A DNA stretch of 64,000 bases, taken from contig NC_052149.1 in assembly GCF_902713615.1 (NCBI RefSeq), positions 127,165,256 through 127,229,255 of the forward strand, read 5' to 3'. Position numbers and translations under genes: made by a program. Origin of the DNA: Scyliorhinus canicula (lineage: Eukaryota). The notes below the pieces were generated by a model, which was not told where the DNA came from, ran no database searches, and was given only the letters and a program-made list of their open reading frames with translations. This document shows positions 700 to 43,131 of the stretch, piece by piece. Within the stretch, counting starts at the first letter, position 1, and each line of letters opens with the position of its first letter.

Positions 700-1500
700 A
701 CACCCCCAGCCAAGCTGCCCCAGTTTAGATACAAAACTGGCATCGACCCAACAATGGGGAAAATTACCCAGGGATCTCCAGTCCACAAGAAGCTGGACAA
801 ATCCAATCCGGACAATTACTGTCCCATCAGTCAACTCTCAATCATCAGCAAAATGATGGGTGTTGTTTCAACAGTGCTCTCAACACTTACTCAGCAATGA
901 CCTGCTCATTGACACTCAGTTAAGGATCTGCCAGGGTCACTCAGCTCCTGACCTCATTATCGCCTTGGTTCAAACATGGACAAAAGAGCAGAACTCCAGC
1001 GGTGAGGCCAGAGTAACTTCCCTTGACATCGAGGCAGCATTTGACCGAGTTGGTCATCAACAAGCCCGAGCAAAATTGGAGTTGATGGGAATCAGAAGGG
1101 AAACTCTCCGCTGGTTGGAGTCATACCCAGCACAAAGGAAGATGGCTGTTGTTTGGGGTTTTAACTCTCCAATCTATATTAATGAGCTGGATGAAGGCAA
1201 TGAGAGTATTGTGGCTAAATTTGCTGATGATAAAATGATAGGTCGGAAAGCAAGTTGTGAGGAGGATACAGAGTCTGAAAAGGGAAATCTAGAATTAGTG
1301 GACACAGTTTAAAAATAAGGGATCTCCGTTTAAGGTGGAGATGAGGAGGAATTTCTTCTCTGAGAGGGTCGTTAGTTTTTGGATTTCTCTTTCCCAGAGA
1401 GCAGTGCATGCTGGGGCATTGAATATATTCCAGGCTGAGTTCGACAGATTTCTGATTGACGAGGGTCAAGGGTTATGGGGACCGACAGGAAAGTGGAGAT
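700..1500 (+). mobile_element. Degenerate CR1/L2-type LINE reverse-transcriptase fragments
   Basis: Translations YCPISQLSIISKMM, LDIEAAFDRV and KFADD match CR1-clade RT motifs; frameshifted; boundaries approximate. Confidence 0.8.
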
Positions 1501-2329
1501 TGGGCCATTTTTAAAAGTTAATTTATGGGATGTGTGGGTCTGAAGTGGGAACCTGCCATCGTGACCTTGTCCAGCCTACAAGTGACTCCAGATCCGCAGT
1601 AATGTTTTGACTCTGAAATGTCCTCTGGAATGGCCGAGCAAGACACTCAGTTCAAGGGCAATTAGGGATGGGCAATAAATGCTGGCCCAGCCAGAGATCA
1701 CACATCACATCAAACAATAAAAATATCTCCAGGGATTTTCAGGAATATTGCATCAGGAATATCGGACTGAACTCGACCCAAAGAGAAAGTAACTGAGAGT
1801 CTCCCCAAAAGCCTGGAACACTGAAGCCACTGGATTGTGAGCCCTGCTGGACCTGTTTGTCATCAGAACTTTGCTAAGAGATAAGCAGGGAGTGGAGAGA
1901 GCAGAGTTAAAGCTGGGGGAAGTGGGACCTCGGTGTCTCACTGTGCTGCTGCTGCTGCTGTGATCAGTTATATCAGAGAGTGTGACAGGGAGCCAGAGCT
2001 CACATCAAACTCTGCCCGTGTCTGTCACACGCAGACTGACAGGAGTCTAGTGAGTGATTTCACTCCATGGTCCAGGAATGTGAACACAGTCTGCAAACGT
2101 CCAGATCTCCTCCACACGGTGGGTAAAAGCTGCTTACTTATATCTTGCTGCTTAAAGGGGGGAATGGAACTAAAGAAATACAGCTGGGCACCCTGTTCTG
2201 CACAGTGTTCTTCAATGAACCATTTCATTCACTGCAGTTCCCCACTAACACCTTCAACTATTCAGCATTTGTGTTTGAGAAAGTTTCAGTATTGAAAGGG
2301 TAAATAACGGAGGATTGGGGTTTACTTAC

Positions 2330-2364
2330 TCAGTCTGAGCTTGGTTCCGTTACCGAACGTAAGC
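2330..2364 (-). CDS. IGKJ: Ig light-chain kappa-type J segment J1 (LTFGNGTKLRL)
   Basis: FGxGT motif; splice donor A|GTAAGT at 2330/2329; 23-RSS immediately upstream. Confidence 0.96.
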
Positions 2365-2403
2365 CACACTGACAGCTTCCAGTGCAGGGGCTGTACAAAA
2401 ACC
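2365..2403 (-). promoter_or_regulatory. 23-bp-spacer RSS of J1
   Basis: Plus strand: heptamer CACACTG 2365-2371, 23-nt spacer, consensus nonamer ACAAAAACC 2395-2403. Confidence 0.95.
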
Positions 2404-2760
2404 TCTGCTCTCTGCTTCACTCACTCACTCTCACCCTCTCTCTGTCTCTCTCTGTCTCTCACTCACTACTGTCTTTCTCTCTCACTCTTTATCTCTCTCT
2501 GTTTCTCTCAATGTCTCTGTGTTTTGTTGGGAGAGTTGAGAATTCTAAGTTTAGATGATAAATCTTTCAGCTGCTCTTCATATTTGGACATGGAGAGTAA
2601 GAGAGAAGCTTGAGGCCTTCAGTGAGCTGTGGACACCACAGGGACTGGAGTGTATAGTGGACAGTGAGAATAATTTGTACAGTTTCCTTTCTTGTGTTTA
2701 TTATATGTTGTCTAAAACTGTGGGATGTGTCAGTACAGGAAGTGGGGCTGTGTGTATTGA

Positions 2761-2788
2761 GGTTTTTGTAAGGCTCTGTATCACTGTG
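2761..2788 (-). promoter_or_regulatory. 12-bp-spacer RSS of V1
   Basis: Minus strand CACAGTG-ATACAGAGCCTT-ACAAAAACC; heptamer and nonamer are both consensus. Confidence 0.97.
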
Positions 2789-3087
2789 TAGGGGGTAGCT
2801 GCTGTACTGCTGACAGTAATAATCAGCGACATCCTCATCCTGTACATTGCAGATTGTCAGGGTGTATTGTATTCCAGATCCACTGCCAGTGAATCGGACC
2901 GATGTTCCTGTGAATCTGCTTGATGTGCTGTAAATCAGCAGAGTGGGTTTCTGACCTTCCCGCTGCTGATACCAAGCAATGGAGCTGCCAGAGTACGTGA
3001 TGGCCGTACAGGTGATGGTTGCGGTCTGGCCCAGGCTCAATGACAGCACCGTGGGAGACTGGGTCATGATGATGTCTCCACTGATAC
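2789..3087 (-). CDS. IGKV: Ig light-chain kappa-type V exon V1, open reading frame
   Basis: Acceptor CAG|GT at 3088/3087; [42 protein letters not shown]; both canonical Cys and Trp present; V 12-RSS / J 23-RSS polarity is kappa-type. Confidence 0.96.
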
Positions 3088-3273
3088 CTGAGGGGTAATA
3101 GAGAAACAGAGTGAAGTAAGAACTGTCACAGAAAGAGCCTGTACAATGAGATATTGTTGGAGACACTGACTGTTCCTCTGCTTTCAGCATTTTCCCTTCA
3201 ATCACAAATCAGTAGAATTGGATTGAAATGGAGAGCAGGAAAATATTCAAGGTGGAAGGAGAGAGATTTGTAC

Positions 3274-3322
3274 CTGCGATGCAGAATGCCAGAGGCCAGA
3301 TCAGCTGGATGGCTGAAATCAT
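3274..3322 (-). CDS. IGKV: Leader exon of V1 (MISAIQLIWPLAFCIA/G)
   Basis: ATG at 3322; 49-nt phase-1 exon; donor G|GTACA; splices in frame to G-ISG-DIIM. Confidence 0.93.
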
Positions 3323-3382
3323 GGTGTCTGCTCCTGTCCCTGTGCCTGGTTACTGATAAACTCTCCCTTCACTGGGCTCTGC

Positions 3383-3479
3383 TTTATAAAGCTGCAGCCT
3401 GTGAGAGTCTGACTGCCCGTTCCTCAGTATGTAAATGGTATGAGGCAGAGACACCACGTCAGCACCTTCACTTCCTCTT
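3383..3479 (-). promoter_or_regulatory. V1 promoter: TATA, octamer variant, CRE-like half site, PU.1 site
   Basis: TTTATAAA 3383-3390; sense ATTTACAT 3429-3436 (1 mismatch to ATTTGCAT); AAGAGGAAGTG 3469-3479; all conserved in the V2 promoter. Confidence 0.75.
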
Positions 3480-3654
3480 CTTCTCTCTCACTCACTCCCT
3501 CAGTATCCCTCAGTCTCTGCTCTCTCTCACTCTCTCTATCTGTCTCTCTGTCTTGTTCCTCCTGTCTCTCTCACTATTTGCTCTCTCCCACTTTCCTTCT
3601 CCCTCATTTTATTTCTCTCTTTGTCCGTCTGTCTACTTATCTCTGTCCCAGAAG

Positions 3655-4089: not shown

Positions 4090-5653
4090 AAAAATAATGA
4101 GATCAAATCTAGTATGCTTGCGTCCAGTAGGTCTTCCAGTAGTGTCTGTCGTGGTGGTTGTGGGTATGTCGTTGTCTCCTTTCGTAGGAAGTTCTTTAGT
4201 TGCAGGTAGCTTAGCTCGTTCCCCCGGCCAGCTGGAACATCTCTGTCAGTTCGCCCAGTGTTGCGATCCTGCCATCCGTGTATAGGTCCCTGACTGTCAG
4301 TGTCTCTCTGTCCTGTCCCCAACTTTTGAAGGTGGCGTCAGTCAGCCCTGGCGTGAGCTTTACCCAACATTTTGGTCAGGCCAAATTACTGCCGTAGTTG
4401 GTTCCAGGATTGGAGAGTGACTATCACCACCGGGCTGCGGGAGTGCTGCCGTGGCGAGGGACCGGAGGGAGGTCCCCATGCAGGAGGCTGCCTCCGCACG
4501 CACCCACTCGGCTTCTGGCTCCTTGATCCATCCCCTTACGTGCTCGGCCGTCGCTGCCTAGTGGTAGAATTGTAGGCCCCCATACGAATGCCATGATTAG
4601 TTTGTCTAGTGCGTTGAAAAAGGCCTTGGGGATGTAGATCGGGATGGATCTGAATAGGAAGAGAAACCTGGGCAGTACATTCATTTTGATCATCTGGACT
4701 CTCCCCGCGAGGGAGAGCGGGAGTGTGTTTCATCTTTGCAGGTCCTTTCTTACTTCCTCCGTCAGGCTGGTGAGGTTCCATTTGTGGATCCCTTTCCAGT
4801 CATGGGCTATTTGGATCCCCCAGGTAGCGGAATTTGTGTCGGGCTTGTTTAAACAGCAGCCCCTTTAGTGCTGCCCCCCCCCCCCCCCCCCCTCATTTGT
4901 GGGTGTACTGGGAAGATCTCGCTTTTGCTCATGTTGAGTTTGTAGCCCAAGAAGGCACCAAACTCTTTCAGGAGCGCGATGATTCTGTCCATGCTGCTTT
5001 GTGGGTCCGAGATGTAGAGGAGCAAGTCATCTGCATAGAGTGAGACTCTGTGCTCTCTGCCTCCCCTTCGGATCCCCCTCCAGCTTTTTGTTGCTCTGAG
5101 CGCAATTGCTAGTGGCTCGATCGCTAGTGCGAACAGCAACGGGGACAGTGGGCATCCTTGTCTGATGCCCCTGTGCAGCTGGAAGTATCGGGAGTTGGTG
5201 TTGTTTGTCCGTACGCTCGCCATGGGAGCGCTATATAGGAGTTTTACCCAGGAGATGAATCCTGTTCCAAGCCCAAACCGCTCCAGTACCTCCATGAGGT
5301 ATTTCCATTCGACTCTGTTGAAGGCCTTTTCTGCGTCTGGGGAGACAATCACCTCTTGTGTTCTCTCCCCAGATGGGGTCATTATCACGTTCAGCAGGCG
5401 CCTAATGTTGGAAGTAAGCTGTCTGCCTTTGACAAAGCCCGTCTGGTCCTCTGCTACCACCTCTAGCACGCAGTCTTCTAGCCTTTTGGCTGGAATCTTG
5501 GCCAGTATTTTGGCATCTGCGTTCAGTAGTGAGATTGGTCTGTATGACCCACATTCCATTGGGTCTTTGTCTTTCATAGGTATCAACGAGATTGAGGCCT
5601 GTGCTAGCGTGGGTGGCAGTGTGCCCTTAGCCAGCGAGTCTGTGAACATTTCC
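4090..5653 (-). mobile_element. L1-clade LINE ORF2 fragment (RT), truncated at both ends
   Basis: YRPISLLNADAKIL, DAEKAFNRV, QGCPLSPLLF and SLYADD motifs (ORF 4849-5649); downstream pieces frameshifted. Confidence 0.9.
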
Positions 5654-6120
5654 TCAATTGAACGCGAGACGAGTTGCTGTACAAAAGTATGGCTTTAATC
5701 AGCTAGATGTTAGCCCTGCGGTCGATGACAGTATAAGGACGACCGCCGGGAGTACTGGGTATTTATACCCCGCCCTGGAAGCAGGGTTAACTCAGCCTCT
5801 CAACCAATCGGGGAGCCGTCACATGACTGGTATCAACCAATCAATCGAGAAGCACATGACCGACTAGGGCCAATGGTAAGCCGGTGTTCTGCACCAATGG
5901 CAGGCAGCTATGCTTATCATACCACCACATTCACCCCTTGCGGAGAAAGAAGCCGGAGGGTGGGGGGGGGGGGGGGGTGTCAACGAGAGCTGGTGGGGGA
6001 GAACTGGTGGTATGAGCAGTAATGAGAGAAGGAAAAAAAATGTATCCTTGGCTTCCCACTGGCCCAGACATTTAACAACAGTGTATACTGTCCACACAAG
6101 GTCCATGGTGGTGTTGAAAG

Positions 6121-8682: not shown

Positions 8683-10167
8683 TTAAAAAACCTTCCCTTG
8701 GACCGTGAGGTCCGCGATGCAGCAGCCGGTGATGCGGACGGAGTGCGAACCTGAGGCTAACCCGATTTTGTGTTTTACAGGATGGACAGGGAGCGCGCAG
8801 CGTCTTACCGTGGCAGGGTGAACGAAGCTCTCCGTACTCCCGGAGTCCAGCAGGCAGCCCGTCTTGTGGCCGTTGAGGTGGATCAGCATCGTTGTTTTGG
8901 CGAGCGTGCGTGGCCGTGACTGGTCGAGTTGAATGGCCTCGAGCCATGGAGAAGAACCATCGTCGTAATCATCGTCGGCCGAGTAGTAGCTGGCAGAACC
9001 TTGTGTGCCAGTCCAGGATGGTGGTGCCCAGGATCCGCACGTGGAGTCGGCGCCCCAAGATAGCGGCGCCCAGGACCCGCACGTGGAGTCGGTGCCCCAA
9101 GATGGCGGCGCCCAGGACCCGCACGTGGAGTCGGGATCCCAAGATGGTGGCGCCCAGGACCCGCACGTGGAGTCGGCGCCCCAAGATGGCGCCGCCCGCG
9201 AGGCCCTCGTGGTTGCTGGGGGCGGGGTTAGCGATGCCGGCGGGCCGACCGGAGCGGCTGAGAGCGGGGGCCGAGAGGTGCGCAGTCCAGGCGCAGGGGC
9301 CGGGGGGCGGGGGGGGGGGGGGGGGGGGGGGGTGGGAGTTGCGTGGTGCGCTGGAAGGGACCGGAAGGCCCCGGAGGAGAGGGGGATGCACGCAGGCCAG
9401 GCGCACGGGCCCGGGGGCGGGGGGGGAGAGAGTTGCACGGTGCACTGGAAGGGCCCGGAAGGCCCCGGAGTAGAGGGGGAGGCACGTAGGCCAGGCGCAG
9501 GGGCGGCGGGGGGGAAGATTAGCTCGATGCGCTGGAGGGGCCCGGAAAGGCCCGGCGGGGGGGAGAGATTGGCGCGGCGGATGCCGGTGGGGAAGCATGC
9601 CAGGAGGCCCAGGGCGCTGCAGTGCAGCTGGGGACATAGGCGCAGGCGTGTAAAGCGGCGACCTCTAGGGAGGTGGAGAGAGTCCGTGCCTCAATTAGGC
9701 TGAGGTCGTCTTTCTCCAGCATCCGGATGGCGGATAGCGGGAGACTGCATCCCAGCCACGTAAGCATCTCTAATCAGAAGTTCCATGTGCTCCGTGGCTG
9801 AAACTTGGAGGCAGGTGCAATTCCTCCCCAGGACAGCGAGGGCCTGGTAAAATTCGTCTAATGACTCACCGGGGAGCTGTTGTCTGGTAGCCAGCAGATG
9901 TCGGGCGAATACTCTGTTTAACGGTTTAAGAAACTGTCCTTTCAGCTTATCCATGGCCGCATCGTAATCTTTTTCCCCTTTTATCGTCGCGTAGGCCGCC
10001 ATGCCCACGCTGGAGTGGAGGATGTGAAGCTTCTGTGCCATGGTGGTGGGGCTGTTTGCGGACGCCAGGTAACCATCGAAACATGCCTGCCAATGTTGAA
10101 AGATTTCTGAGGCGTTCTGAGTCTGCGAGCTGATGCGGAGGCATTCGGGCTTGATCTGGAACTCCAT
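8683..10167 (-). pseudogene. Gypsy A gag-protease, frameshifted
   Basis: MEFQIKPECL..HWQACF..ARHLLATR (homologous to gag of B, C, D); Pro-rich linker; LLDSGS protease. Confidence 0.85.
9013..9197. repeat. 42-bp tandem repeat (about 4.4 copies) inside Gypsy A gag
   Basis: Unit CCAAGATGGCGGCGCCCAGGACCCGCACGTGGAGTCGGCGCC; encodes APPSWDPDSTCGSW-type repeats on the minus strand. Confidence 0.9.
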
Positions 10168-10477
10168 CTTCAAAAATCTAGCTGATTCAATTGATGAGCC
10201 ATCAATCGAACGCGATACGAGTTGCTGTACAAAAGTTAGGCTTTAATAAGCTAGCAGTTAGCCCTGCAGTCGACTACAGTAAATGGCCGACCGCCGGGCA
10301 TTCTGGGTATTTATACCTCGCTCTGAGGCAGGGTTAACTCAGCCTCTCGACCAATCGGGGAGCCGTCACATGACTGGTTTCAACCAATCGGTCGAGAGGC
10401 ACATGACCGACCAGGGCCAATGGTAAGCCAGTGTTCTGCACCAATGGCAGACAGCTATGCAAATCATACCATCACAC

Positions 10478-11230
10478 AGATGGAGTATAATGTGGAGAAA
10501 TGTGAGCTTGTTCACTTTGTTAGGGGGAATAGAAAAGCAGAATATTATTGAAATGGAGAGAGACTGCAGAAAGCTGTGATACAGAGGGATCTGGGCGTCC
10601 TTGTGTATGAATCACAGAAAGTTAACCTGCAGGTACAGCAAGTGATGAGGAAAGTCAATGGAATGTTGTCCTTTATTACACGGGGGATGGAGTATAAAAG
10701 TAGGGAAGTCTTGCTCCATCTATACAGCACATTGGGGAGACTACACCGTGAGAACTGGGTACAGTGTTGGTCTCCTTACTTAAGGACGGATATTCCAACA
10801 TTAGAAGCACAACATTGAGGGCCGAAGGGCCTGTTCTGTGCTGTACTGTTCTATGTTCTATGTTCTAGTTCAGCGAAGGTTCACTGGGCTGATTCCACTG
10901 AGGAATGGAATGTCTAATGAGGAAAGGTTGAGCTGGTTGGGTCTGCACTCATTGCAGAATTAGAGGTGATCTTATTGAAACATATAAGATTCCGAGGGAG
11001 CTTGACAGGGTGGATGCTGAGAGAATGTTTCCCCTTGTGGGGAATCGAGAAATAGTGGACAGTTTAAAAATAAGGGATCTCCATTTAAGGTGGAGATGAG
11101 AAGGAATTCCTTCTCTCAGAGGGTTGTTAGTTTTTGGAATTCTCTTTCCCAGAGAGCAGTGCATGCTGGGACATTGAATATATTCCAGGCTGAGTTCGAC
11201 AGATTTTTGATTGGGGGTCAAGGGTTATGG
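10478..11230 (+). mobile_element. CR1-type LINE fragment with an embedded HE1/HER1-like tail
   Basis: QRDLGVLV..ENWVQCWSPYLR; tail GAGGGCCGAAGGGCCTGTTCTGTGCTGTACTGTTCTATGTTCTA near 10818-10866. Confidence 0.8.
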
Positions 11231-12077
11231 GGTCAGGCAGGAAAGTGGAGTTTGGGCCATTTTTAAAAGTTAATTTATGGGATGTGTGGGTCTGAAGTGG
11301 GAGCCTGCCATCCTGAACTTGTCCGGCCTACAAGTGACTCCAGATCCTCAGTAATGTGTTGACTCTGAAATGTCCTCTGGAATGGCCGAGCAAGACACTG
11401 AGTTCAAGGGCAATTAGGGATGGGCAATAAATGCCAGAGATCACACATCACATCAAACAATAAAAATATCTTCAGGGATTTTGAGGAATATTGGATCAGG
11501 AATAAATATCAGACTGAACTCGACCCAAAGAGAAAGTAACTGAGAGTCTCCCCAAAAGCCTGGAACACTGAAGCCACTGGATTGTGAGCCCTGCTGGACC
11601 TGTTTGTCATCAGAACTTTGCTAAGAGATAAGCAGGGAGTGGAGAGAGCAGAGTTAAAGCTGGGGGAAGTGGGACCTCGGTGTCTCACTGTGCTGCTGCT
11701 GCTGCTGTGATCAGTTATATCAGAGAGTGTGACAGGGAGCCAGAGCTCACATCAAACTCTGCCCGTGTCTGTCACACGCAGACTGACAGGAGTCTAGTGA
11801 GTGATTTCACTCCATGGTCCAGGAATGTGAACACAGTCTGCAAACGTCCAGATCTCCTCCACACGGTGGGTAAAAGCTGCTTACTTATATCTTGCTGCTT
11901 AAAGGGGGGGAATGGAACTAAAGAAATACAGCTGGGCACCCTGTTCTACACAGTGTTTTTCAATGAACCATTTCATTCACTGCAGCTCCCCACTAACACC
12001 TTCAACTATTCAGCATTTGTGTTTGAGAAAGTTTCAATATTGAAAGGGTTAATAACGGAGGATTGGGGTTTACTTAC

Positions 12078-12112
12078 TCAGTCTGAGCTTGGTTCCTTTA
12101 CCGAACGTAAGC
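12078..12112 (-). CDS. IGKJ: Kappa-type J segment J2 (LTFGKGTKLRL)
   Basis: FGKGT motif, intact GTAAGT donor and 23-RSS. Confidence 0.95.
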
Positions 12113-12151
12113 CACACTGACAGCTTCCAGTGCAGGGGCTGTACAAAAACC
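12113..12151 (-). promoter_or_regulatory. 23-RSS of J2
   Basis: CACACTG 12113-12119, 23 nt, ACAAAAACC 12143-12151; identical to the J1 RSS. Confidence 0.95.
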
Positions 12152-12482
12152 TCTGCTCTCTGCTTCACTCACTCACTCTCACCCTCTCTCTGTCTTTCAC
12201 TCACTCATGTCTTTCTCTCTCATTCTTTCTCTCTCTGTTTCTCTCAATGTCTCTTTTTTTGGGAGAGTTGAGAATTCTAATTTATGTCAAAAATCTTTCA
12301 GCTGCGCTTCATATGTGGACATGGAGAGTAAGATGGAAAATTGAGGCCTTCAGTGAGCTGTGGACACCACAGGGACTGGAGTGTGTAGTGGACAGTGAGA
12401 ATAATTTCCTTTCTTGTGTTTATTCTATATTATATAAAACTGTGGGATGTGTCAGTGCAGGAAGTGGGGCTGTGTGTATTGA

Positions 12483-12510
12483 GGTTTTTGTAAGGCTCTG
12501 TATCACTGTG
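12483..12510 (-). promoter_or_regulatory. 12-RSS of V2
   Basis: CACAGTG-ATACAGAGCCTT-ACAAAAACC; identical to the V1 RSS. Confidence 0.97.
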
Positions 12511-12813
12511 TTGGGGGGTAGCTGTGATACTGCTGACAGTAATAATCAGAGACATCCTCATTCTGCACATTGCTGATTGTCAGGGTGTATCATGTTCCAG
12601 ATCCACTGCCGGTGAATCGGTCGGAAATTCCTGCGAATCGAGTTGCTGTATTGTGGATCAGCAGAGCGGGTTTCTGACCTTCTCGCTGTTGATACCAATG
12701 AAGATAACTGCTGCTAACAGATTGACTGGCCGTACAGGTGATGGTTGCTGTCTGGCCCAGGCTCAATGATAGCACCGGGGGAGACTGGGTCATGATGATG
12801 TCTCCACTGATAC
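12511..12813 (-). pseudogene. IGKV: Kappa-type V exon V2 with one in-frame TGA in FR3
   Basis: ..[32 protein letters not shown]; stop at 12590-12592; the frame is otherwise intact. Confidence 0.93.
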
Positions 12814-12999
12814 CTGAGGGGTAATAGAGAAACAGAGTGAAGTAAGAACTGTCACAGAAAGAGCCTGTACAATGAGATATTGTTGGAGACACTGACTGTT
12901 CCTCTGCTTTCAGCATTTTCCCTTCAATCACAAGTCAGTAGAATTGGATTGAAATGGATAGCAGGAAATTATTCAAGGTGGAAGGAGAGAGATTTGTAC

Positions 13000-13048
13000 C
13001 TGCGATGCAGAATGCCAGAGGCCAGATCAGCTGGATGGCTGAAATCAT
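13000..13048 (-). CDS. IGKV: Leader exon of V2
   Basis: Identical 49-nt exon to the V1 leader; ATG 13048; donor at 12999. Confidence 0.9.
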
Positions 13049-13108
13049 GGTGTCTGCTCCTGTCCCTGTGCCTGGTTACTGATAAACTCTCCTTTCACTG
13101 GGCTCTGC

Positions 13109-13205
13109 TTTATAAAGCTGCAGCCTGTGAGAGTCTGACTGCCCGTTCCTCAGTATGTAAATGGTATGAGGCAGAGACACCACGTCACCACCTTCACTTC
13201 CTCTT
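13109..13205 (-). promoter_or_regulatory. V2 promoter (TATA, octamer variant, PU.1)
   Basis: TTTATAAA 13109-13116; ATTTACAT 13155-13162; AAGAGGAAGTG 13195-13205. Confidence 0.75.
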
Positions 13206-13768
13206 CTTCTCTCTCACTCCATCCCTCCCTCCCGTCTGCTTCTCTTCAACTGTACCTGTGGCTCAGTCTCTGCTCTCTCTCTCTAATTTCCTTTCTACTT
13301 CCCCCTCTATGGTGGTATGACTAGTAGGTTTACGGGACCTCAGAGCCGTGCTGCCATTGGTGCAGAGGACTCGCTGCCCATTGGCTCAGGCAGGTCATGT
13401 GTCTCTCTGCCAATTGGCTGAGGCTAGTCATGTGACTGCTCGCCGATTGGCCGAGAGGCCGGTAGCCCCTCCTACAAGGCGGGGTATAAGTACCTGTAAC
13501 AGCCAGCAGTCGGCCTTTCTCTGTCAGTCGACTGCCGGGCACACAACTAGTTCATTAAAGCCTGATGTTTGAAACTTCTTCACGACTCGAGTCCGATTGA
13601 TGGCACATCAATTTAATGAACTAAAAATTTGAAATGGAGCTACGGATCAAGCCAGACTGCCTCCGCATCAGCCCGCAGGCTACAAACGCGTCAGCAACTT
13701 TTAAACTTTGGCTGGCGTGCTTCAACAGCTACCTCACCACTACGGACAGCCATCCCACAAAGGAGCAG

Positions 13769-18725: not shown

Positions 18726-19659
18726 CTCCACACTAACCCGTAGTACGCGTATGTGGAGTATCCCGACGGACGGCAGGACACGGTCTCCCTTCGGGACCTG
18801 GCACCCGCCGGTGTGCGGCCACACCCCCCCCTCCAGTCCCAACCGCCCCGGCGCCCCCAGCGCTCCCGCAACCCAGCGCACAGGAACCCCTCCCCCGGCC
18901 AGAGTTCCATTCGCACCGACCAGGGGTACGAACACAGGACCACGACCGCCGCTCCCGGAGTCACGCACGACCACCGACCCGACGTCACCGGCACCGCTGC
19001 GACGGTCCAGCAGAACATCGAGGATGCCCGTCAGACTGATCGAGTCGATCTGATGTTCCACTGGACTTTACGTGTTGTTTAGTGTTCCCATGTACAAAGT
19101 TGCACGTCTTTTTTCTTTCTTTCTCGCTTTCTCTTTTGTTTTGTTTATCCTTTGTTGTTCAGAAGTGAATTGTGTATTGCTGTTCTGTTGCACATTGTCG
19201 CGGGCCAGTGGGCAGCCACCAGATACACCAGGTACACCTCATTCTCTCTAGTCAGACCGCCAGTCTGACACCCCCACCCCCCCCAACCACACCCCCCCCA
19301 CCCCCCCACCCCCGCTTTTCTTGCTCCTCCTCTCTCTCCCCCCGGCTTCTTTCTCCACAAGGGGTGAATGTGGTGGTATGACTAGGAGGTTTATGCTACC
19401 TCAGAGCAGTGCTGACATTGGTGCAGAGGACTCGCTGCCCATTGGCTCAGGCAGGACATGTGTCTCTCTGCCAATTAGCTGGGGCTAGTCATGTGACTGC
19501 TCGCCGATTGGCCGAGAGGCCGGTAGTCCCTCCTACGAGGTGGGGTGTAAGAACCCACAACAACCAGCAGTCAGCCTTTCTCTGTAAGTCGACTGCCGGG
19601 CACACAACTAGTTCATTAAAGCCTGATATTTGGAACTTCTTCACGACTCGAGTCCGATT

Positions 19660-21047
19660 TTTTTTAAAAAATAATTTTTATTAAGGTTTTCACAAAATAT
19701 AAACAACAAAACAATATTAACAGAATAACCATGGTAAATACCCAAGAACAACACCCACCCCCCTACAAAAGCAACTACTAAATCAAAAACAAAAAAAAAA
19801 CAAACAACAGAAAGGAAAGAGATAACACCCACCACATCCAACAAACCCATGTACACACTTCTCCCTCCCACCAAACCCAATCCCCCCCCCCCCTCCCCTC
19901 CCGGGTTGCTGCTGCTGATGGCCTATTTCCCTACCGTTCCGCCAGGAAGTCCAGGAAAGGCTGTCACCGCCTAAAGAACCCTTGTACTGATCCTCTCAGG
20001 GCAAATTTCACCTTCTCCAATTTGATGAACCCCGCCATATCATTGAGCCAGGCCTCCACGCTTGGGGGCCTCGCATCCTTCCACTGAAGCAAGATCCTCC
20101 GCCGGGCTACTAGGGACGCAAAGGCAAGAACACCGGCCTCTTTCGCCTCCTGCACTCCCGGCTCCACTGCAACCCCAAAAATTGCGAGTCCCCAGCCTGG
20201 CTTGACCCTGGATCCCACAGCCCTCGACACCGTCCTTGCTAGCCCCTTCCAAAACTCCCCCAGCGCTGGGCATGCCCAAAACATATGGGCGTGGTTCGCT
20301 GGGCTCCCCGAGCACCTGGCACACCTGTCTTCGCCCCCGAAAAACCTCGTCCCAGTCATGTGGGCCTTATGCAGCACCTTGAACTGTATGAGGCTAAGCC
20401 TCGCACAGGAAGAGGAGGAATTCACTCTGTCCAGGGCATCCGCCCACGTCCCCTCCTCAATCTCCTCACCCAGCTCCTCTTCCCATTTACCCTTCAGCTC
20501 CTCCACTGAGGCCTCGTCTACCTCCTGCATTACGCGGTATATGTCCGAAATCCTCCCTCCTCCAACCCACACCCCCGAGAGCACCCTGTCCCGTACCCCA
20601 CGTGGGGGCAGCAGAGGAAACCCCTCCACCTGCCGCTTGGCAAACGCCCTATCCTGCATGAACCTAAACATGTTCCCTGGGGGGAGCCCAAACTTCCCCT
20701 CTAACTCCCCCAGGCTCGCGAGCCTCCCCTCCACAAACAGGTCCCTCAACCTCCTGATACCTACCCTGGGCCAGCCCAGAAATCCGCCATAAATGCTCCC
20801 TGGAATAAACCGGTGGTTCCCCCGTATCGGGGACTCCATCAAGCCCCCACCTCCCCCCTATGCCGTCTCCATTGCCCACAAATATTGAGGGTAGCCGCCA
20901 CCACCGGGCTCGTGGTATACCTCGTTGGAGGGAGCAGCAACGGTGCCGTTACCAGCGCCTCCAGGCTCGTGTCCACACAGGACGCCATCTCCATCCTCTT
21001 CCATGCTGCCCCTTCCCTGTCCATTACCCACTTACACACCATCCACA
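19660..21047 (-). mobile_element. 5'-truncated L1-clade LINE inserted in the U5 of the Gypsy B 3' LTR
   Basis: ORF2 C-terminus (LIQFKVLHKAH, C..C..H..W.C); T-run at 19660; 14-bp TSD ACTCGAGTCCGATT at 19646-19659 and 21048-21061. Confidence 0.93.
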
Positions 21048-21269: not shown

Positions 21270-21910
21270 TGAGTGCAGCAGTTAAATGCTTCCCTTTCAC
21301 TCTCTCTATCACTGTCTACCCCTCGCTCTCTCTTCCCCACACTCTCCCAGGTGGATCACAGTTAAATGCTTCCCTTTCTCTCTCTCTATCATTGTCTACC
21401 CCTCGCTCTCTCTTTCCCACACTCTCCCAGGTGGATCACAGTTAAATGCTTCCCTCTCTCTCTCTGTCACAGTCTGCTCCTCGCTCTCTCTATCCCACAC
21501 TCTCCCAGGTGGATCACAGTTAAATGCTTCCCTCTCTCTCTCTCTCTCTGTCACAGTCTGCTCCTCACTCTCTCTATCCCACACTCTCCCAGGTGGATCA
21601 CAGTTAAATGCTTCCCCCTCTCTCTCTCTCTGTCTCAGTCTGTTCCTCGCTCTCTTCCCACACTCTCCCAGGTGGATCACAGTTAAATGCTTCCCTCTCT
21701 CTCTCTCTCTCTGTCACAGTCTGTTCCTCGCTCTCTCTTTCCCACACTCTCCCAGGTGGATCACAGTTAAATGCTTCCCTCTCTCTCTCTCTCTGTCACA
21801 GTCTGTTCCTCGCTCTCTCTACCCCACACTCTCCCAGGTGGATCACAGTTAAATGCTTCCCTCTCTCTCTCTCTCTGTCACAGTCTGTTCTTCGCTCTCT
21901 CTTTCCCACA
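21270..21910. repeat. About 80-bp minisatellite, ~8 copies, with an internal variable (CT)n
   Basis: CTCTCCCAGGTGGATCACAGTTAAATGCTTCCC(CT)nGTCACAGTCTG..; GTTAAATGC recurs every ~80 nt from 21281 to ~21850. Confidence 0.95.
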
Positions 21911-21954
21911 CTCTCCCTCTCCTCTGCTCCACCAATGGATGCTGTCCCTTGACC

Positions 21955-22992
21955 CCAGAGGTTGATGGAAAAAGTGAAGTCGTATGGGTTTCAGGGTGTA
22001 CTAGCTAGATGGATAAAGAACTGGCTAGGCAACAGGAGACAGAGAGTAGTGGTGGAAGGGAGTGTCTCAAAATGGAGAAGGGTGACTAGTGGTGTTCCAC
22101 AGGGATCCGTGCTCGGACCACTGTTGTTTGTGATATACATAAATGACCTGGAGGAAGGTATAGGTGGTCTGATTAGCAAGTTTGCAGATGATACTAAGAT
22201 TGTTGGAGTTGCAGATAGCGAGGAGGACTGTCAGAGAATACAGCAAAATATAGATAGATTGGAGAGTTGGACAGAGAAATGGCAGATGGAGTTCAATCCA
22301 GACAAATGCGAGGTGATGCATTTTGGAAGATCTAATTCAAGAGCGTACTATACGGTCAATGGAAGAGTCCTGGGGAAAATTGATGTACAGAGAGATCTGG
22401 GAGTTCAGGTCCATTGTACGCAGGTTGATAGAGTGGTCAAGAAGGCATACAGCATGCTTGCCTTCATTGGTTAGGCCACATAAAGGTGGATGCTTTAGAG
22501 AGGGTGCAGAGGAGGTTAACCAGATGTTGGCTGGTATGGAATGTGGGAGCTATGAAGAAAGGTTGAGTAGATTAGGATTGTTTTCATTGGAAAGATGGAG
22601 GTTGAGGGGAGACCTGATTGAGGTCTACAAAATTATGAGAGGTATGGACAGGGTGGATAGCATCAAGCTTTTTCCAAGAGTGGGGGTGTCAATTACAAGG
22701 GGTCACGATTTCAAGGTGAGAGAGGGAAAGTTTAAGGGAGATGTGCGTGGAAAGTTTTTTATGCAGAGGGTGGTGGGTGCCTGGAACGCTTTGCCAGAAT
22801 GCTTTGGTAGAGGCGGGCAAGATAGCATCATTTAAGATGCATCTGGACAGATATATGAACGGGCGGGGAACAGAGGGAAGTAGATCCTTGGAAAATAGGC
22901 AACAGGTTTAGATAAAGGTCTGGATCGGCGCAGGCACGGAGGGCCAAAGGGCCTGTTCCTGTGCTGTAATGTTCTTTGTTCTTTGTTCTTTG
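21955..22992 (+). mobile_element. CR1-type (HER1-like) LINE 3' part
   Basis: GVPQGSVLGPLLF, KFADDTK, QRDLGV; 3' tail GAGGGCCAAAGGGCCTGTTCC..(TTCTTTG)n. Confidence 0.92.
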
Positions 22993-23040
22993 TATGTCTT
23001 CTCCAGGAGTTAGAGCCCCTTTCCCATCTTGTATCTCCAA

Positions 23041-26000
23041 TGGGCCCTCCAATAGAGAGCAGTAAACATGGGCCTCCTTCCCACTGGACCCTCCAATAGG
23101 GACCTGTAAACATGGGCCTCTTTACCTCTAGACCCTCCAATAGGGACCAGTAAACATTGGGCCTCCTTCCCACTGGACCCTCCAATAGGGACCAGTAAAC
23201 ATGGGCCTCCTTCCCACTGGGCCCTCCAATAGGGACCAATAAACATGGGCCTCCTTCCCACTGGACCCTCCAATAGGGACCAGTAAACATGCGTCTCCTT
23301 CCCACTGGACCCTCCAACAATAACCAGTAAACATGGGCCTCTTTCCCACTGACCCTCCAATAGAGACCAGTAAACATGGGCCTCTTTCCCACTGGACCCT
23401 CCAATAGGGACCAGTAAATATGGGCCTCCTTCCCACTGGACCCTCCAATAGGGACCAGTAAACATGGGCCTCCTTCCCACTGACCCTCCAATAGGGACCA
23501 GTAAACATGGGCCTCCTTCCCACTGGATCCTTCATTCGGGACCAATACACATGGGCCTCCTTCCCACTGGATCCTTCATTCGGGACCAGTAAACATGGGC
23601 CTCCTTTCCACTGGATCCTTCATTCGGGACCAGTAAACATGGGCCTCCTTCCCACTGGATCCTTCATTCAGGACCAATAAACATGGGCCTCCTTCCCACT
23701 GGACCCTCTAATTGGGACCAGTAAACATGGGCCTCCCTCCCACTGGACGCTCCAATAGGGACCAGTAAACATGGGCCTCCTTCCCACTGGACCCTCCAAT
23801 AGCGACCAGTAAACATGGGCCTCCTTCCCACTGGACCCTCCAATAGGGACCAGTAAACATGGGCCTCCTTCACACTGGATCCTTAATTCGGGACCAATAA
23901 ACATGGGCCTCCTTTCCACTGGATCCTTCATTCGGGACCAATAAACATGGGCCTCCTTCCCACTGGACCCTCCAATAGGGACCAGTAAACATGGACCTTT
24001 TTTCCCACTGGACCCTCCAATAGAGACCAGTAAACATGGGCCTCCTTCCCATTGGACCCCCCAATAGTGACCAGTAAACATGGACCTTTTTCCCACTGGA
24101 CCCTCCAATAGGGACCAGTAAACATGGGCCTCCATCCCACTGGACCCTCCAATAGGGACCAGTAAACATGGGCCTCCTTCCCACTGGACCCTCCAATAGT
24201 GACCAGTAAACATGGGCCTCCTTCCCACTGGATCCTTCATTCGGGACCAGTAAACATGGGCCTCCTTCCCACTGGACCCTCCAATAGAGAGCAGTAAACA
24301 TGGGCCTCCATCCCACTGGACCCTCCAATAGGGACCAGTAAACATGGGCCTCCTTCCCACTGGACCCTCCAATAGTGACCAGTAAACATGGGCCTCCTTC
24401 CCACTGGACCCTCCAATAGGGACCAGTAAACATGGGCCTCCTTCCCACTGGACCCTCCAATAGGGACCAGTAAACATGGGCCTCCTTCCCACTGGACCCT
24501 CCAATAGTGACCAGTAAACATGGGCCTCCTTCCCACTGGACCCTCCAATAGGGACCAGTAAACATGGGCCTCCTTCCCACTGGACCCTCCAATAGAGCCC
24601 AGTAAACATGGGCCTCCTTCCCACTGGACCCTCCAATAGGGACAAGTAAACATGGGCCTCCTTCCCACTGGACCCTCCAATAGTGTCCAGTAAACATGGG
24701 CCTCCTTCCCACTGGACCCTCCAATAGAGAGCAGTAAATATGGGCCTCCTTCCCACTGGACCCTCCGATAGGGACCAGTAAACATGGACCTTTTTCCCAC
24801 TGGACCCTCCAATAGAGACCAGTAAACATGGGCCTCCTTCCCACTAGACCCTCCAATAGGGACCAGTAAACATGGGCCTCCTTCCCACTGGATCCTTCAT
24901 TCAGGACCAATAAACATGGGCCTCCTTTCCACTGGATCCTTCATTCGGGACCAGTAAACATGGGCCTCCTTCCCACTGGACCCTCCAATAGGGAGCATTA
25001 ACATGGGCCTCCTTCCCACTGGTTCCTTCATTCGGGACCAATAAACATGGGCCTCCTTTCCACTGGATTCTTCATTCGGGACCAATAAACATGGGCCTCC
25101 TTCCCACTGGACCCTCCAATAGTGACCAGTAAACATGGACCTTTTTCCCACTGGACCCTCCAATAGAGACCAGTAAACATGGGCCTCCTTCCCACTGGAC
25201 CCTCCAATAGGGACCAGTAAACATGGGCCTCCTTCCCAATGGACCCTCCAATAGATAACAGTAAACATGGGCCTCCTTCCCACTGGACCCTCCAATCGAG
25301 CCCAGTAAACATGGGCCTCCTTCCCACTGGACCCTCCAATAGGGACTGGCAAACATGGGCCTCCTTCCCACTGGACCCTCCAATAGGGACCAGTAAACAT
25401 GGGCTTCCTTCCCACTGGACCCTCCAATAGTGACCAGTAAACATGGACCTTTTTCCCACTGGACCCTCCAATAGGGACCAGTAGACATGGGCCTCCTTCC
25501 CACTTTACCCTCCAATAGTGACCAGTAAACATGGGCCTCCTTCCCACTGGACCCTCCAATAGGGACCTGTAAACATGGGCCTCCTTCCCACTGGACCCTC
25601 CAACAGTAACCAGTAAACATGGGCCTCCTTCCCACTGGATCCTTCATTCGGGACCAATAAACATGGGCCTCCTTTCCACTGGTTCCTTCATTCGGGACCA
25701 GTAAACATGGGTCGCCTTCCCACTGGATCCTTAATTCGGGACCAATAAACATGGGCCTCCTTCCCACTGGACCCTCTAATTGCGACCAGTAAATATGGGC
25801 CTCCTTTCCACTGGACCCTCCAATAGGGACCAGTAAACATGGGCCTCCTTCCCACTGGACCCTCCAATAGTGACCAGTAAACATGGACCTTTTTCCCACT
25901 GGACCCTCCAATAGAGACCAGTAAACATGGGACTCCTTCCCACTGGACCCTCCAATAGGGACCAGTAAACATGGGCCTCCTTCCCAATGGACCCTCCAAT

Positions 26001-29000
26001 AGAGACCAGTAAACATGGGCCTCCTTCCCACTGGACCCTCCAATCGAGCCCAGTAAACATGGGCCTCCTTCCCACTGGACCCTCCAATAGGGACTGGCAA
26101 ACATGGGCCTCCTTCCCACTGGACTCTCCAATAGGGACCAGTAAACATGGGCCTCCTTCCCACTGGACCCTCCAATAGGGACCAGTAAAAATGGGCCTCC
26201 TTCGCACTGGATCCTTCATTCGGGGCCAATAAACATGGGCCTCCTTTCCACTGGATCCTTCATTCGGGACAAATAAACATGGGCCTCCTTCCCACTGGAC
26301 CCTCCAATAGTGACCAGTAAACATGGACCTTTTTCCCACTGGACCCTCCAATAGAGACCAGTAAACATGGGCCTCCATCCCACTGGACCGTCCAATAGGG
26401 ACCAGTAAACATGGGCCTCCTTCCCACTGGACCCTCCAATAGTGACAAGTAAACATGGGCCCCCTTCCCACTGGACCCTCCAATAGTGACCAGTAAACAT
26501 GGGCCTCCTTCCCACTGACCCTCCAATAGAGACCAGTAAACATGGGCTTCCTTCCCACTGGACCCTCCAATAGTGACCAGTAAACATGGACCTTTTTCCC
26601 ACTGGACCCTCCAATAGGGACCAGTAGACATGGGCCTCCTTCCCACTTTACCCTCCAATAGTGACCAGTAAACATGGGCCTCCTTCCCACTGGACCCTCC
26701 AATAGGGACCTGTAAACATGGGCCTCCTTCCCACTGGACCCTCCAACAGTAACCAGTAAACATGGGCCTCCTTCCCACTGGATCCTTCATTCGGGACCAA
26801 TAAACATGGGCCTCCTTTCCACTGGATCCTTCATTCGGGACCAGTAAACATGGGCCTCCTTCCCACTGGATCCTTCATTCGGGACCAATAAACATGGGCC
26901 TCCTTCCCACTGGACCCTCCAATAGGGACCAGTAAACATGGGCTTCCTTCCCACTGGACCCTCCAATAGGGACCAGTAAACATGGGCCTCCTTCCCACTG
27001 GACCCTCCAATAGGGATTAGTAAACATGGGCCTCCTTACCACTGGACGCTCCAATAGGGACCAGTAAACATGGGCCTCCTTCCCACTGGATCCTTCATTC
27101 GGGACCAATAAACATGGGCCTCCTTCCCACTGGACCCTCTAATTGCGACCAGTAAATATGGGCCTCCTTTCCACTGGACCCTCCAATAGGGACCAGTAAA
27201 CATCGGCCTCCTTCCCACTGGACCCTCCAATAGTGACCAGTAAACATGGACCTTTTTCCCACTGGACCCTCCAATTGAGACCAGTAAACATGGGCCTCCT
27301 TCCCAATGGACCCTCCAATAGAGACCAGTAAACATGGGCCTCATTCCCACTGGACCCTCCAATCGAGCCCAGTAAACATGGGCCTCCTTCCCACTGGACC
27401 CTCCAATAGGGACTGGCAAACATGGGCCTCCTTCCCACTGGACCCTCCAATAGGGACCAGTAAACATGGGCCTCCTTCCCACTGGACCCTCCAATAGGGA
27501 CCAGTAAACATGGGCCTCCTTCCCACTGGATCCTTCATTCGGGGCCAATAAACATGGGCCCTCTTTCCACTGGATCCTTCATTCGGGACAAATAAACATG
27601 GGCCTCCTTCCCACTGGACCCTCCAATAGTGACCAGTAAACATGGACCTTTTTCCCACTGGACCCTCCAATAGAGACCAGTAAACATGGGCCTCCATCCC
27701 ACTGGACCCTCCAATAGGGACCAGTAAACATGGGCCTCCTTCCCACTGGACCCTCCAATAGTGACAAGTAAACATGGGCCCCCTTCCCACTGGACCCTCC
27801 AATAGTGACCAGTAAACATGGGCCTCCTTCCCACTGGACCCTCCAATAGAGACCAGTAAACATGTGCCTCCTTCCCACTGACCCTCCAATAGGGACCAGT
27901 AAACATGGGCTTCCTTCCCACTGGACCCTCCAATAGTGACCAGTAAACATGGACCTTTTTCCCACTGGACCCTCCAATAGGGACCAGTAGACATGGGCCT
28001 CCTTCCCACTTTACCCTCCAATAGTGACCAGTAAACATGGGCCTCCTTCCCACTGGACCCTCCAATAGGGACCTGTAAACATGGGCCTCCTTCCCACTGG
28101 ACCCTCCAACAGTAACCAGTAAACATGGGCCTTCTTCCCACTGGATCCTTCATTCGGGACCAATAAACATGGGCCTCCTTTCCACTGGATCCTTCATTCG
28201 GGACCAGTAAACATGGGCCTCCTTCCCACTGGATCCTTCATTCGGGACCAATAAACATGGGCCTCCTTCCCACTGGACCCTCTAATTGCGACCAGTAAAT
28301 ATGGGCCTCCTTCCCACTGGACCCTCCAATAGGGACCAGTAAACATGGGCCTCCTTCCCACTGGACCCTCCAATAGGGACCAGTAAACATGGGCCTCCTT
28401 CCCACTGGACCCTCCAATAGGGATTAGTAAACATGGGCCTCCTTACCACTGGACGCTCCAATAGGGACCAGTAAACATGGGCCTCCTTCCCACTGGATCC
28501 TTCATTCGGGACCAATAAACATGGGCCTCCTTTCCACTGGATCCTTCATTCGGGACCAATAAACATGGGGCTCCTTCCCACTGGACCCTCCAATAGTGAC
28601 CAGTAAACATGGACCTTTTTCCCACTGGACCCTCCAATAGTGACCAGTAAACATGGACCTTTTTCCCACTGGACCCTCCAATAGGGACCAGTAAACATGG
28701 GCCTCCTTCCCACTGGACCCTCCAATAGGGACCAGTAAACATGGGCCTCCTTCCCACTGGACCCTCCAATATGGACCAGTAAACATGGACCTTTTTCCCA
28801 CTGGACCCTCCAATAGAGACCAGCAAACATGGGCCTCCTTCCCACTTTACCCTCCAATAGTGACCAGTAAACATGGGCCTCCTTCCCACTGGACCCTCCA
28901 ATAGTGACCAGTAAACATGGGCCTCCTTCCCACTGGACCCTCCAATAGGGACCAGTAAATATGGGCCTCCTTCCTTCTGGACCCTCCAATCGTGACCAGT

Positions 29001-31900: not shown

Positions 31901-33699
31901 GTATTCTCAAAGTGAAGGTGGGACTTTGTCTCCACAAGGACTGTGTGGTGGTCACTCCTACCAATACTGTCATGGACAGATGCAGTTGAGGCAGGCAGGT
32001 TGGTGAAGTCAAGTATGTTTCTTCCTCATGTTGGTTCCCTCATTACTTGCCACAGACCCAGTCGAGCAGCTATGAAAATCGCTTATTGTCACGAGTAGGC
32101 TTAAATGAAGTTACTGTGAAAAGCCCTTAGTCGCCACATTCCGGCGCCTGTCCGGGGAGGCTGATACGTGAATCGAACCGTGCTGCTGGCCTGCCTTGGT
32201 CTGTTTTCAAAGCCAGCGATTTAACCCAGTGAGCTAAACCAGCTATGTCCTTTAAGACACGACCAGCTCGGTCAGTAATGGTGCTACAGCAACACTGTTC
32301 ATGATGGACATTGAAGTCCCCCACCCAGAATACAATTTACCCTTTTTCCACCCTCAGTGTTTCTTCCACTAAGTGTTCAACATGGTGGAGTTCTGATTCA
32401 TAAACTGCAGTTGATGGTAACCAGCAGGAGGTTTCCTTGTCCATGTTTGACTGGTACCATGAAGCTACATGGAGTCAGGATTCAATGTTGAGGATTCCCA
32501 GGGTGATTCCCTCCTGACTGTATACCACTGCGCCCCCACCTCTGCTGGGTCTGTCCTGCCGGTGAGACAGGACATACCCAGGGATGCTGATGGTGGTGTC
32601 TGGGACATTATCTGTAAGGTATGATTCTGTGAGTGTGACTATGTCAGGCTGTTGCTGACTAGTCAGTGGGACAGCTCTCCCAATTCTAACACAAGCCCCC
32701 AGATATCAGGAAGGAGGACTTTGCAGGGTCGACAGGGCTGGGTTTGCCGTTGTTGTTTCCGGGGTCTATGTCGATGCCGGGAGGTCTGTTCGGTTTCATT
32801 CCTTTTAGAATTTTCAGCGGTTTGATACAACTGAGTGGCTATTTCAGAGTCAACCACATTGCTGTGGGTCTGGAGTCACATGTAGGCCAGACCAGGTAAG
32901 GACGGAAGATTTCCTGCCCTGAAGGACATTAGTTGACCAGGTGTGTTTTTACGACAATCGACAATGGTTTGATGGTCACCATTACTGAGACGAGTTTTTA
33001 ATTCCAGATTTATTCATTGAATTTAAATTCCACCCGCTGCCATGGTGGGATTTGAACCTGTGACCAGAGCATTAGCCTGGGCCTCTGGATTACTAGTCCA
33101 GTGACATTACCACTACACCACGGCCTCCCCCACATTGTGCTGTGGGGCTCCATGGAACTGTATCCCAGCATGAAGTGTCCCTCAGGAGGGGAGAGGGAAT
33201 GTTCGGAGCCCTGAGCTCCATTTCCCAGCCCAGGCATTTTGTCTTCCAATGAATGAATGAGATGCCAATTTGGAGCCAGGTTAGGGACAGTCTCGTGCTG
33301 TGGACCCAGGTCTACAAGAGGCAATTGGAGATATCCCTGAAAGGGAAAGATTTGCTGGGTTATGGGGATAGAGAGGAGGAGTGGGACTAATTGGGTAAGT
33401 CACAGCACGATGGGCAGAATGGCCTCCTTCTGTGCTGGAAGATTTGAGGCAGTGGACACAGTTCACAGTTTTCTCCCGTGTCAGTAACAAACATCCAGCT
33501 GCTCTGAGCCCCTTCTTTCACTTCCTCTGTTGGTTCTGTTTCAATCTTCCGATCTGACAGTCTTTGCTGTTATTTTTTACACTGGGGGTTTCTGCTGTGG
33601 TCTGAATCTCTAACAATAACTGTCCAATCAGTGTAAAGAACAGCAGCTAAGAGCAGTCAGGACTGAGGAGCCAGGCTCACTGGGAAACACATTGGGAAG

Positions 33700-43112: not shown

Positions 43113-43131
43113 CAATATAACATTTTTTATC

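Follow-up and report, generated by a model that had tools for sequence, protein, structure and literature searches.

How does an LTR retrotransposon initiate reverse transcription when the sequence next to its 5′ LTR does not look like a tRNA-binding site? This question is raised by four Ty3/Gypsy elements, here named A to D, in a 64-kb window of the Scyliorhinus canicula genome (i.e. the whole stretch of DNA analysed, to which all coordinates refer), none of which carries a TGG-starting tRNA primer-binding site. The original prediction for this locus held that the primer-site position is instead occupied by a sequence forming a covarying duplex with the element's own LTR, and that the elements are candidates for self-priming. 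This core reading is supported by the comparative sequence evidence presented below: with a probability of roughly 0.78, these elements represent a Mag-like, chromodomain-less Ty3/Gypsy lineage that is primed by its own RNA, in a manner similar to Tf1 and without a tRNA.

Self-BLAST of the window placed element A on the minus strand, with its 5′ LTR at 10192-10476 and its 3′ LTR at about 5654-5929 (89 % identity), and element B on the plus strand, with a 5′ LTR at 13308-13610 that starts with TaTGGTGG and ends with ..CACATCA. The 3′ LTR of B (19369-19660, plus strand) is 92 % identical to its 5′ counterpart and contains the same TAGTTCATTAAA, the last ~10 nt being lost or diverged. Element C, also on the plus strand, has LTRs at 56118-56346 and 63423-63651 (91 % identity) and is flanked by a 5-bp target-site duplication (TSD), GTTAT; nested inside it on the minus strand is element D, with a 5′ LTR at 61151-61399 and a 3′ LTR at 57525-57783 (91 % identity). 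Pfam searches of the pol pieces in the window identified protease, RT, RNase H and integrase, arranged in the order typical of Gypsy elements. Among the matches listed, the closest proteins are those of Scyliorhinus canicula and S. torazame, followed by rays and then by a very large set of invertebrate proteins with 51-66 % identity. All four elements are broken, the longest ORF being a 625-aa pol piece in A; considering also that the LTR pairs are only 89-92 % identical, there is no sign of recent activity in the window. The value of these copies therefore lies in the rule that they reveal, the copies themselves being old and broken.

The window harbours further repeats. A satellite array with a 44-nt unit extends over approximately 22990-29000 and comprises at least 137 overlapping copies of a 300-nt reference, about 60-96 % identical, while self-BLAST offsets revealed tandem arrays at 41963-43121 (period of ~54 nt) and 21279-21917 (period of ~80 nt) with ~90 % identity between units. 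A 2.2-kb direct repeat (1282-3501 and 11039-13227, 93 % identical) flanks A and reaches almost to B; it may have arisen by local duplication, or else represent the two LTRs of a far larger element that was entered by A. The one tRNA gene called in the window by ARAGORN, a Thr-AGT on the minus strand (33038-33124), is with 87 nt long for a tRNA and may be a SINE or a pseudogene.

Reverse transcription needs a primer directly beside U5, and the sequence at this position is therefore where the primer anneals. The LTR end at ..CATCA is secure because the 3′ LTRs of C and D continue through it, ending with ..GTGCATCA and ..AAGCATCA, respectively, and in C the LTR is immediately followed by the TSD GTTAT. 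Clean TSDs and LTRs that are 99-100 % identical place the boundary at the same position in invertebrate relatives. In A and B, the 3′ LTRs depart from their 5′ LTRs 10-13 nt short of ..CATCA and at nearly the same place, i.e. after GATTGA or GATT (5640-5660 and 19650-19665).

With this boundary, element B has a primer-binding site, TTTAATGAACTA (13612-13623), that does not start with TGG and that is separated from the LTR end (13610) by a single spacer base, A (13611). All 12 nt of the site are complementary to the candidate self-primer segment TAGTTCATTAAA (13548-13559), which forms a homologous block in the two-arm alignment described below; the last six bases of this segment are the hexamer ATTAAA (13554-13559), and GCCT comes next. 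The interval 13560-13611 thus spans the 51 nt from the predicted junction A/GCCU (the slash denoting the junction) to the LTR end, plus the spacer. The gag ATG (13634-13636) opens an N-terminal motif, MELRIKPD.., that is common to invertebrate relatives. In element C, the segment TTAGTATAATAAA (56286-56298) within the 5′ LTR is matched at 13/13 positions by the site TTTATTATACTAA (56348-56360), with the gag ATG at 56373-56375; the copy of the segment in the 3′ LTR (63591-63603) is mutated. Element D, on the minus strand, has the segment ATCTAGTCCAATAAA (61201-61215) within its 5′ LTR and the site TTTATTGGACTAGAT (61135-61149), which pair at 15/15 positions, the gag ATG being located at 61124-61126 and the 3′ LTR copy of the segment at 57575-57589. 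In element A, likewise on the minus strand, the site TTGAATCAGCTAGAT (10176-10190; gag ATG at 10165-10167) matches the segment of its own 3′ LTR, ATCTAGCTGATTAAA (5694-5708), at 14/15 positions, and the decayed copy in its 5′ LTR (10242-10256) at only 11/15.

The coordinates and counts of the original prediction were right on re-measurement, i.e. exact reverse complements of 12, 13 and 15 nt in B, C and D to an LTR segment ending with ATTAAA or AATAAA, starting one base past ..CATCA, the 14/15 match of A to its own 3′ LTR, and a gag ATG 24-27 nt past the LTR in all four elements. None of 3000 dinucleotide-preserving shuffles of each LTR equalled the observed duplex length, the shuffle maxima being 9-12 nt.

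Relatives were collected, as had been proposed together with the original prediction, by protein look-up and by using a pol alignment to scan contigs from metagenomes. This yielded 25 further families with the same layout, from an ant genome (family L004, from Cyphomyrmex costatus), another NCBI genome, and ENA and JGI contigs, which together with the four shark elements make up 29 non-redundant families in which both the layout and the covariation between LTR and post-LTR sequence recur. Many of these relatives are young, with 97-100 % identical LTRs and clean 5-bp TSDs. The order is the same throughout: the LTR segment is followed by RCCU, and a loop spanning 24-70 nt leads to the LTR end, which reads (A/T/G)CA. 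A single spacer base, an A in 26 of the 29 families, separates this end from the complementary site, and the gag ATG usually lies 11-35 nt from the start of the site. The junction reads GCCT in 19 families, ACCT in five, GCCA in two, and ACCA, GCTC and GCGT in one each. Constancy of the loop, which had also been predicted, holds for the shark families, with 49-52 nt from segment to site, but not for the wider lineage with its 24-70 nt.

The sites start with TTTAWY, TTTTAA, TCTTCA or similar, there being at least 27 different sequences among the 29 families. As in A to D, none starts with TGG, and no tRNA-type site was found at any assessable locus of the relatives. Intact relatives (L013, L017 and L018) measure 4.0-4.2 kb and encode a single gag-pol ORF of 1213-1238 aa, which starts 15-18 nt after the beginning of the site and ends 13-30 nt before the 3′ LTR; therefore, no other primer site fits. 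The idea that four families had each replaced a tRNA site has to be given up; the trait was inherited from a deep metazoan lineage.

Some loci call for separate comment. L003 (Trichinella) was left out, as its LTR pair was not found. L072 seemed to be a counter-example and was dismissed as such: at L072:5786-10200, the LTRs on both sides belong to an L013-type element whose strand is opposite to that of the pol match, and the expected 19-nt site is present on the strand of these LTRs. An inverted interior or nested copies may account for this. In L071 and L074, which represent a more distant family (48 % pol identity), a 13-bp LTR complement begins 8 nt further from the presumed ..CATCA-A end (at about 5680-5745 in L074), and no 3′ LTR was found there to fix the boundary.

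The compensatory covariation claimed for the four shark elements is borne out by the 29 families. Over the first 12 bp of the duplex, 340 of 348 pairs are Watson-Crick pairs, one is G·U and seven are mismatches, the latter being confined to old copies (A, L060 and L061). Within a family, the duplex has a median of 14 contiguous bp (range 11-19), compared with a mean of 4.3 bp and a maximum of 11 bp when a site is paired with the LTR of another family. Pairs were counted on a gap-free MAFFT alignment of both arms from 17 families: 88 % of the cells are paired, versus 68 % after shuffling and 30-46 % with the partner slid by one to three columns, and 54 cells are changed on both sides, versus 16.6 in the shuffles. 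None of 500 shuffles equalled these values. RNAalifold, run without any hint, predicts a 13-bp helix between LTR and site and no other, with compensatory changes in 10 of the 13 pairs and one-sided changes in none, and this helix is present in the minimum-free-energy fold of nearly all family leaders. Two pairs of sister families (L017 and L018 as well as L008 and L009) differ by one substitution, which is found in both LTRs and, complemented, in the site; therefore, the change passed through replication as a unit. In tRNA-primed retroviruses, the primer-binding site is re-copied from the primer in every cycle. Considering that a helix kept for its folding alone should show G·U pairs, their near-absence suggests that the site described here is likewise re-copied from its primer each cycle.

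The sequence comparisons thus show where the site is located, that it complements the LTR and covaries with it, that no space is left for a second one, and that the arrangement extends across the lineage. Alternatives to self-priming were weighed against these observations. Chance or low-complexity, A/T-rich sequence might produce such complementarity, or the LTR boundary might have been misplaced and the true site lie elsewhere, e.g. at TGGCACATCA, the TGG-starting sequence left where the 3′ LTRs of A and B diverge 10-13 nt early. We reject this possibility as having next to no probability, since the shuffle and cross-family controls exclude chance, and a misplaced boundary is contradicted by the 3′ LTRs of C and D, the TSD of C and the young invertebrate relatives. 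In all of these the LTR ends after ..CA, which rules out TGGCACATCA, located within the LTR end, as a hidden site. Alternatively, the primer might be a small RNA of the host, such as a tRNA or a tRNA half, the match to the LTR being secondary. Internal parts of tRNAs are indeed used by some LTR elements, e.g. half-molecules of tRNA-Met or tRNA-Ile as primers in copia lineages (PMC6317226). However, the sites vary with their own LTRs, each of the at least 27 different sequences matching the LTR of its own family and none starting with TGG, and single substitutions co-occur in both LTRs and the site. Changes of this kind, in hosts from ants to sharks, cannot be tracked by a host RNA of constant sequence, and we regard this explanation as very improbable.

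An unlikely but more substantial objection is that the duplex may act as RNA structure only, i.e. in occlusion of the 5′ poly(A) signal, packaging, dimerisation or translation control, with something else priming. In HIV-1, for instance, a poly(A) hairpin lowers the use of the 5′ signal. In 19 of the 29 families, AATAAA or ATTAAA forms the end of the paired LTR segment; the pairing partner of this segment is found only at the 5′ end of the RNA, and the helix is the dominant structure predicted for the leader. On the other hand, 10 of the 29 families lack a canonical hexamer at this position (carrying GTTAAA, TGAAGA or others), and in L004 and L009 an AATAAA is unpaired, being located in the loop. 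Therefore, masking of the poly(A) signal in the 5′ LTR, which the original prediction had added as a consequence of the duplex, cannot be its general role; as a second role, it is plausible in the 19 families whose duplex contains one of the two canonical hexamers. Furthermore, a primer must anneal next to U5, which is precisely the sequence of the site, and the early start of the ORF leaves no space for another one. A helix maintained by folding would also be expected to contain G·U pairs, of which there is one in 348. Self-priming by the element's own RNA is thus the reading that we retain.

As to the identity of these elements, the Mag family is characterized by two adjacent CCHC knuckles, one ORF, and the lack of a GPY/F motif and of a chromodomain (PMC5408684), and its members measure ~4 kb (PMC4131045). 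The consensus of our alignment contains two adjacent CX2CX4HX4C knuckles in Gag, at approximately residues 213 and 233 in L006, L013, L017 and L018. A GPY/F motif was not present in the intact ORFs, and no chromodomain was detected by Pfam in the pol pieces of the window or in the Pfam lists of the 120 homologues listed. The families also resemble the Mag lineage (Mag, SURL and Jule; A-, B- and C-clades) in their size of ~4 kb, short LTRs, a single gag-pol ORF without a frameshift, and a wide distribution in animals including vertebrates. The lineage is thus probably Mag-like, judged by these features rather than by placement in a tree, and, in contrast to Tf1 and the sushi chromoviruses, it has no chromodomain at the integrase C-terminus.

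Self-priming itself has precedents. In Tf1 and Tf2 of S. pombe, a self-primer in R pairs with the primer-binding site and is cleaved off by the RT (PMC5341516), while for Tj1 of S. japonicus the primer-binding site was described as complementary to the mRNA 5′ end and self-priming was proposed (PMC4600332). Self-primers have moreover been predicted for the Tf1/sushi group in fungi and vertebrates, for Tcn1 in non-seed plants and for TAR, a Ty1/copia group of plants (PMC6317226; PMC4600332); the plant survey inferred self-priming by the same method as used here, i.e. from the complementarity between the 5′ LTR and the post-LTR sequence (PMC6317226). The elements described here share with Tf1, Tf2 and Tj1 the lack of a tRNA site and a primer-binding site by the 5′ LTR that complements their own R region, but differ from these fungal chromoviruses in being animal, chromodomain-less and Mag-like. 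Tcn1, TAR and the Tf1/sushi group likewise belong to other lineages (chromoviruses and copia), and a link to the poly(A) hexamer is not reported for them in the parts of the literature available to us. With tRNA-primed Ty3/Gypsy elements and retroviruses, our families have in common the position of the site directly after U5, whereas TGG and a constant match to a host RNA are absent and the site varies with the element's own LTR.

The Tf1 primer consists of the first 11 nt of the mRNA, and it is not removed. The duplex of 11-19 bp found here is of a similar length. In contrast to Tf1, the poly(A) hexamer marks the end of the segment, usually as part of it, and the conserved RCCU comes next; the loop comprises only 24-70 nt, so that the strong-stop DNA would be unusually short. 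No statement on priming in the Mag lineage was found in the searchable full-text literature, and older papers on SURL, Jule and Tf1/sushi may contain an earlier mention. What appears to be new, as far as comparative evidence can indicate, is a Mag-like lineage of animals that would self-prime in the manner of Tf1, from a primer whose 3′ end is located in the poly(A) hexamer region.

Cleavage, extension and strand transfer are inferred here by analogy with Tf1 and Tf2 (PMC5341516; PMC4600332), and copy-back as well as the start and end of the RNA are proposed in the same conditional sense. In the genomic RNA, the LTR segment ending with AWUAAA would fold back across the loop of 24-70 nt (49-52 nt in the shark families) and pair with the site, whereupon the RT/RNase H of the element would cut at the conserved junction A/RCCU, just as the RT of Tf1 cleaves where its primer duplex ends. 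The only sequence hint of such cleavage is the junction itself, conserved across the 29 families. The new 3′ OH would be located exactly where the end of a primer is required, one base from the LTR end, and its extension would produce a very short strong-stop DNA of about 33-70 nt, for which the interval 13560-13611 would provide the template in B (about 52 nt). This DNA would then transfer to the 3′ R by means of the short stretch that separates the junction from the poly(A) site; for this first strand transfer, the remaining R overlap would be very short, ~10-25 nt by our estimate. Finally, plus-strand synthesis would copy the primer back into the site, thereby keeping the duplex Watson-Crick and carrying any mutation of the LTR segment into the site. 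In its full form, i.e. that a major animal-wide Gypsy lineage (Mag-like; insects, marine invertebrates and sharks) needs no host tRNA because its RNA is cut just after the poly(A) hexamer and the cut end acts as the primer, an undescribed variant of self-priming, we give this proposal slightly worse than even odds.

One element of it that bears on the comparison with Tf1 is the start of the RNA. A putative TATA-like box, GTATAAGT, is located at 13484-13491 (plus strand) in B, and each of the four shark LTRs contains a TATAA-like box, located 66-69 nt upstream of the hexamer and 57-63 nt upstream of the segment. L004, L005 and L006 also have one, 45-62 nt before the segment; no such box was found in the other invertebrate families. 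The position of the box suggests an RNA start 25-33 nt upstream of the segment, whereas the Tf1 primer is located at the very 5′ end of the mRNA. The original prediction of a primer of 42-45 nt, 'unlike Tf1', assumed a start ~30 nt upstream and was derived from the TATA-like box only. With a start 25-33 nt upstream, the primer would have a 5′ tail, which has no precedent in Tf1, and the 3′ end of the plus-strand strong-stop DNA made on such a long-tailed primer cannot anneal; therefore, the duplex of 11-19 bp would be in keeping with an RNA that begins at the 5′ border of the segment, as in Tf1. With a start downstream of the segment, the 5′ copy of the segment would be absent from the RNA. 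Between the 5′ border of the segment and a position 25-33 nt upstream, the chances are about even.

RNA-seq reads on the LTR and leader of B were few, mostly less than 95 % identical and in both directions, with no start site, poly(A) tail or pile-up among them. However, 46 RNA reads run upstream of gag (13634) with ..GCATCA-A-TTTAATTAACTA, representing a fifth shark variant of the site, which is transcribed across the LTR end.

A palindrome or hairpin, differing in sequence, is found between the TATA-like box and the primer segment of each shark LTR, i.e. CAGTCGACTG in both A and B, and stems of 7 bp in C and 10 bp in D (at approximately 10262-10290, 13520-13540, 56250-56275 and 61220-61255 for A to D, respectively); the start site predicted for the sharks would fall within it. 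Rfam gave no match in 13300-13700.

Tf1 also needs a U5-IR stem-loop adjoining its duplex. Of the 24 families with CCT at the junction, 16 have a small hairpin, RCCU..AGG, that begins exactly there and recalls this stem-loop; 4.6 were expected, and none of 5000 shuffles equalled the observed number. The hairpin lies within the first ~30 nt past the junction and was found in L002, L006-L010, L013, L020, L024, L027, L035, L053, L055, L060, L061 and L079, but is absent from the four shark families. Under a looser criterion, i.e. any stem of at least 4 bp after the junction, there was no excess (21 versus 19.8 in shuffles).

In the searchable literature, descriptions of self-priming have so far concerned two plant groups and the Tf1/sushi chromoviruses. 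If our reading is true, self-priming would extend to a widespread group of animal retrotransposons, whose very compact LTR would link primer choice to its poly(A) region. The rule, consisting of the A/RCCU junction, one spacer base and a duplex of 11-19 bp, is simple and testable on leader RNA with recombinant RT. In addition, the near-absence of G·U pairs offers a way to separate, by sequence alone, a re-copied primer site from an ordinary RNA helix. There would also be consequences for annotation: surveys based on complementarity to tRNAs, such as one that searched for primer sites with 12 nt of tRNA sequence (PMC13524379), would score such elements as lacking a primer site, and annotation tools for which a tRNA site is mandatory would largely overlook the lineage. 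By the same token, defences directed at tRNA-primer sites would not recognize this lineage, and silencing by 3′ tRNA fragments would miss such elements.
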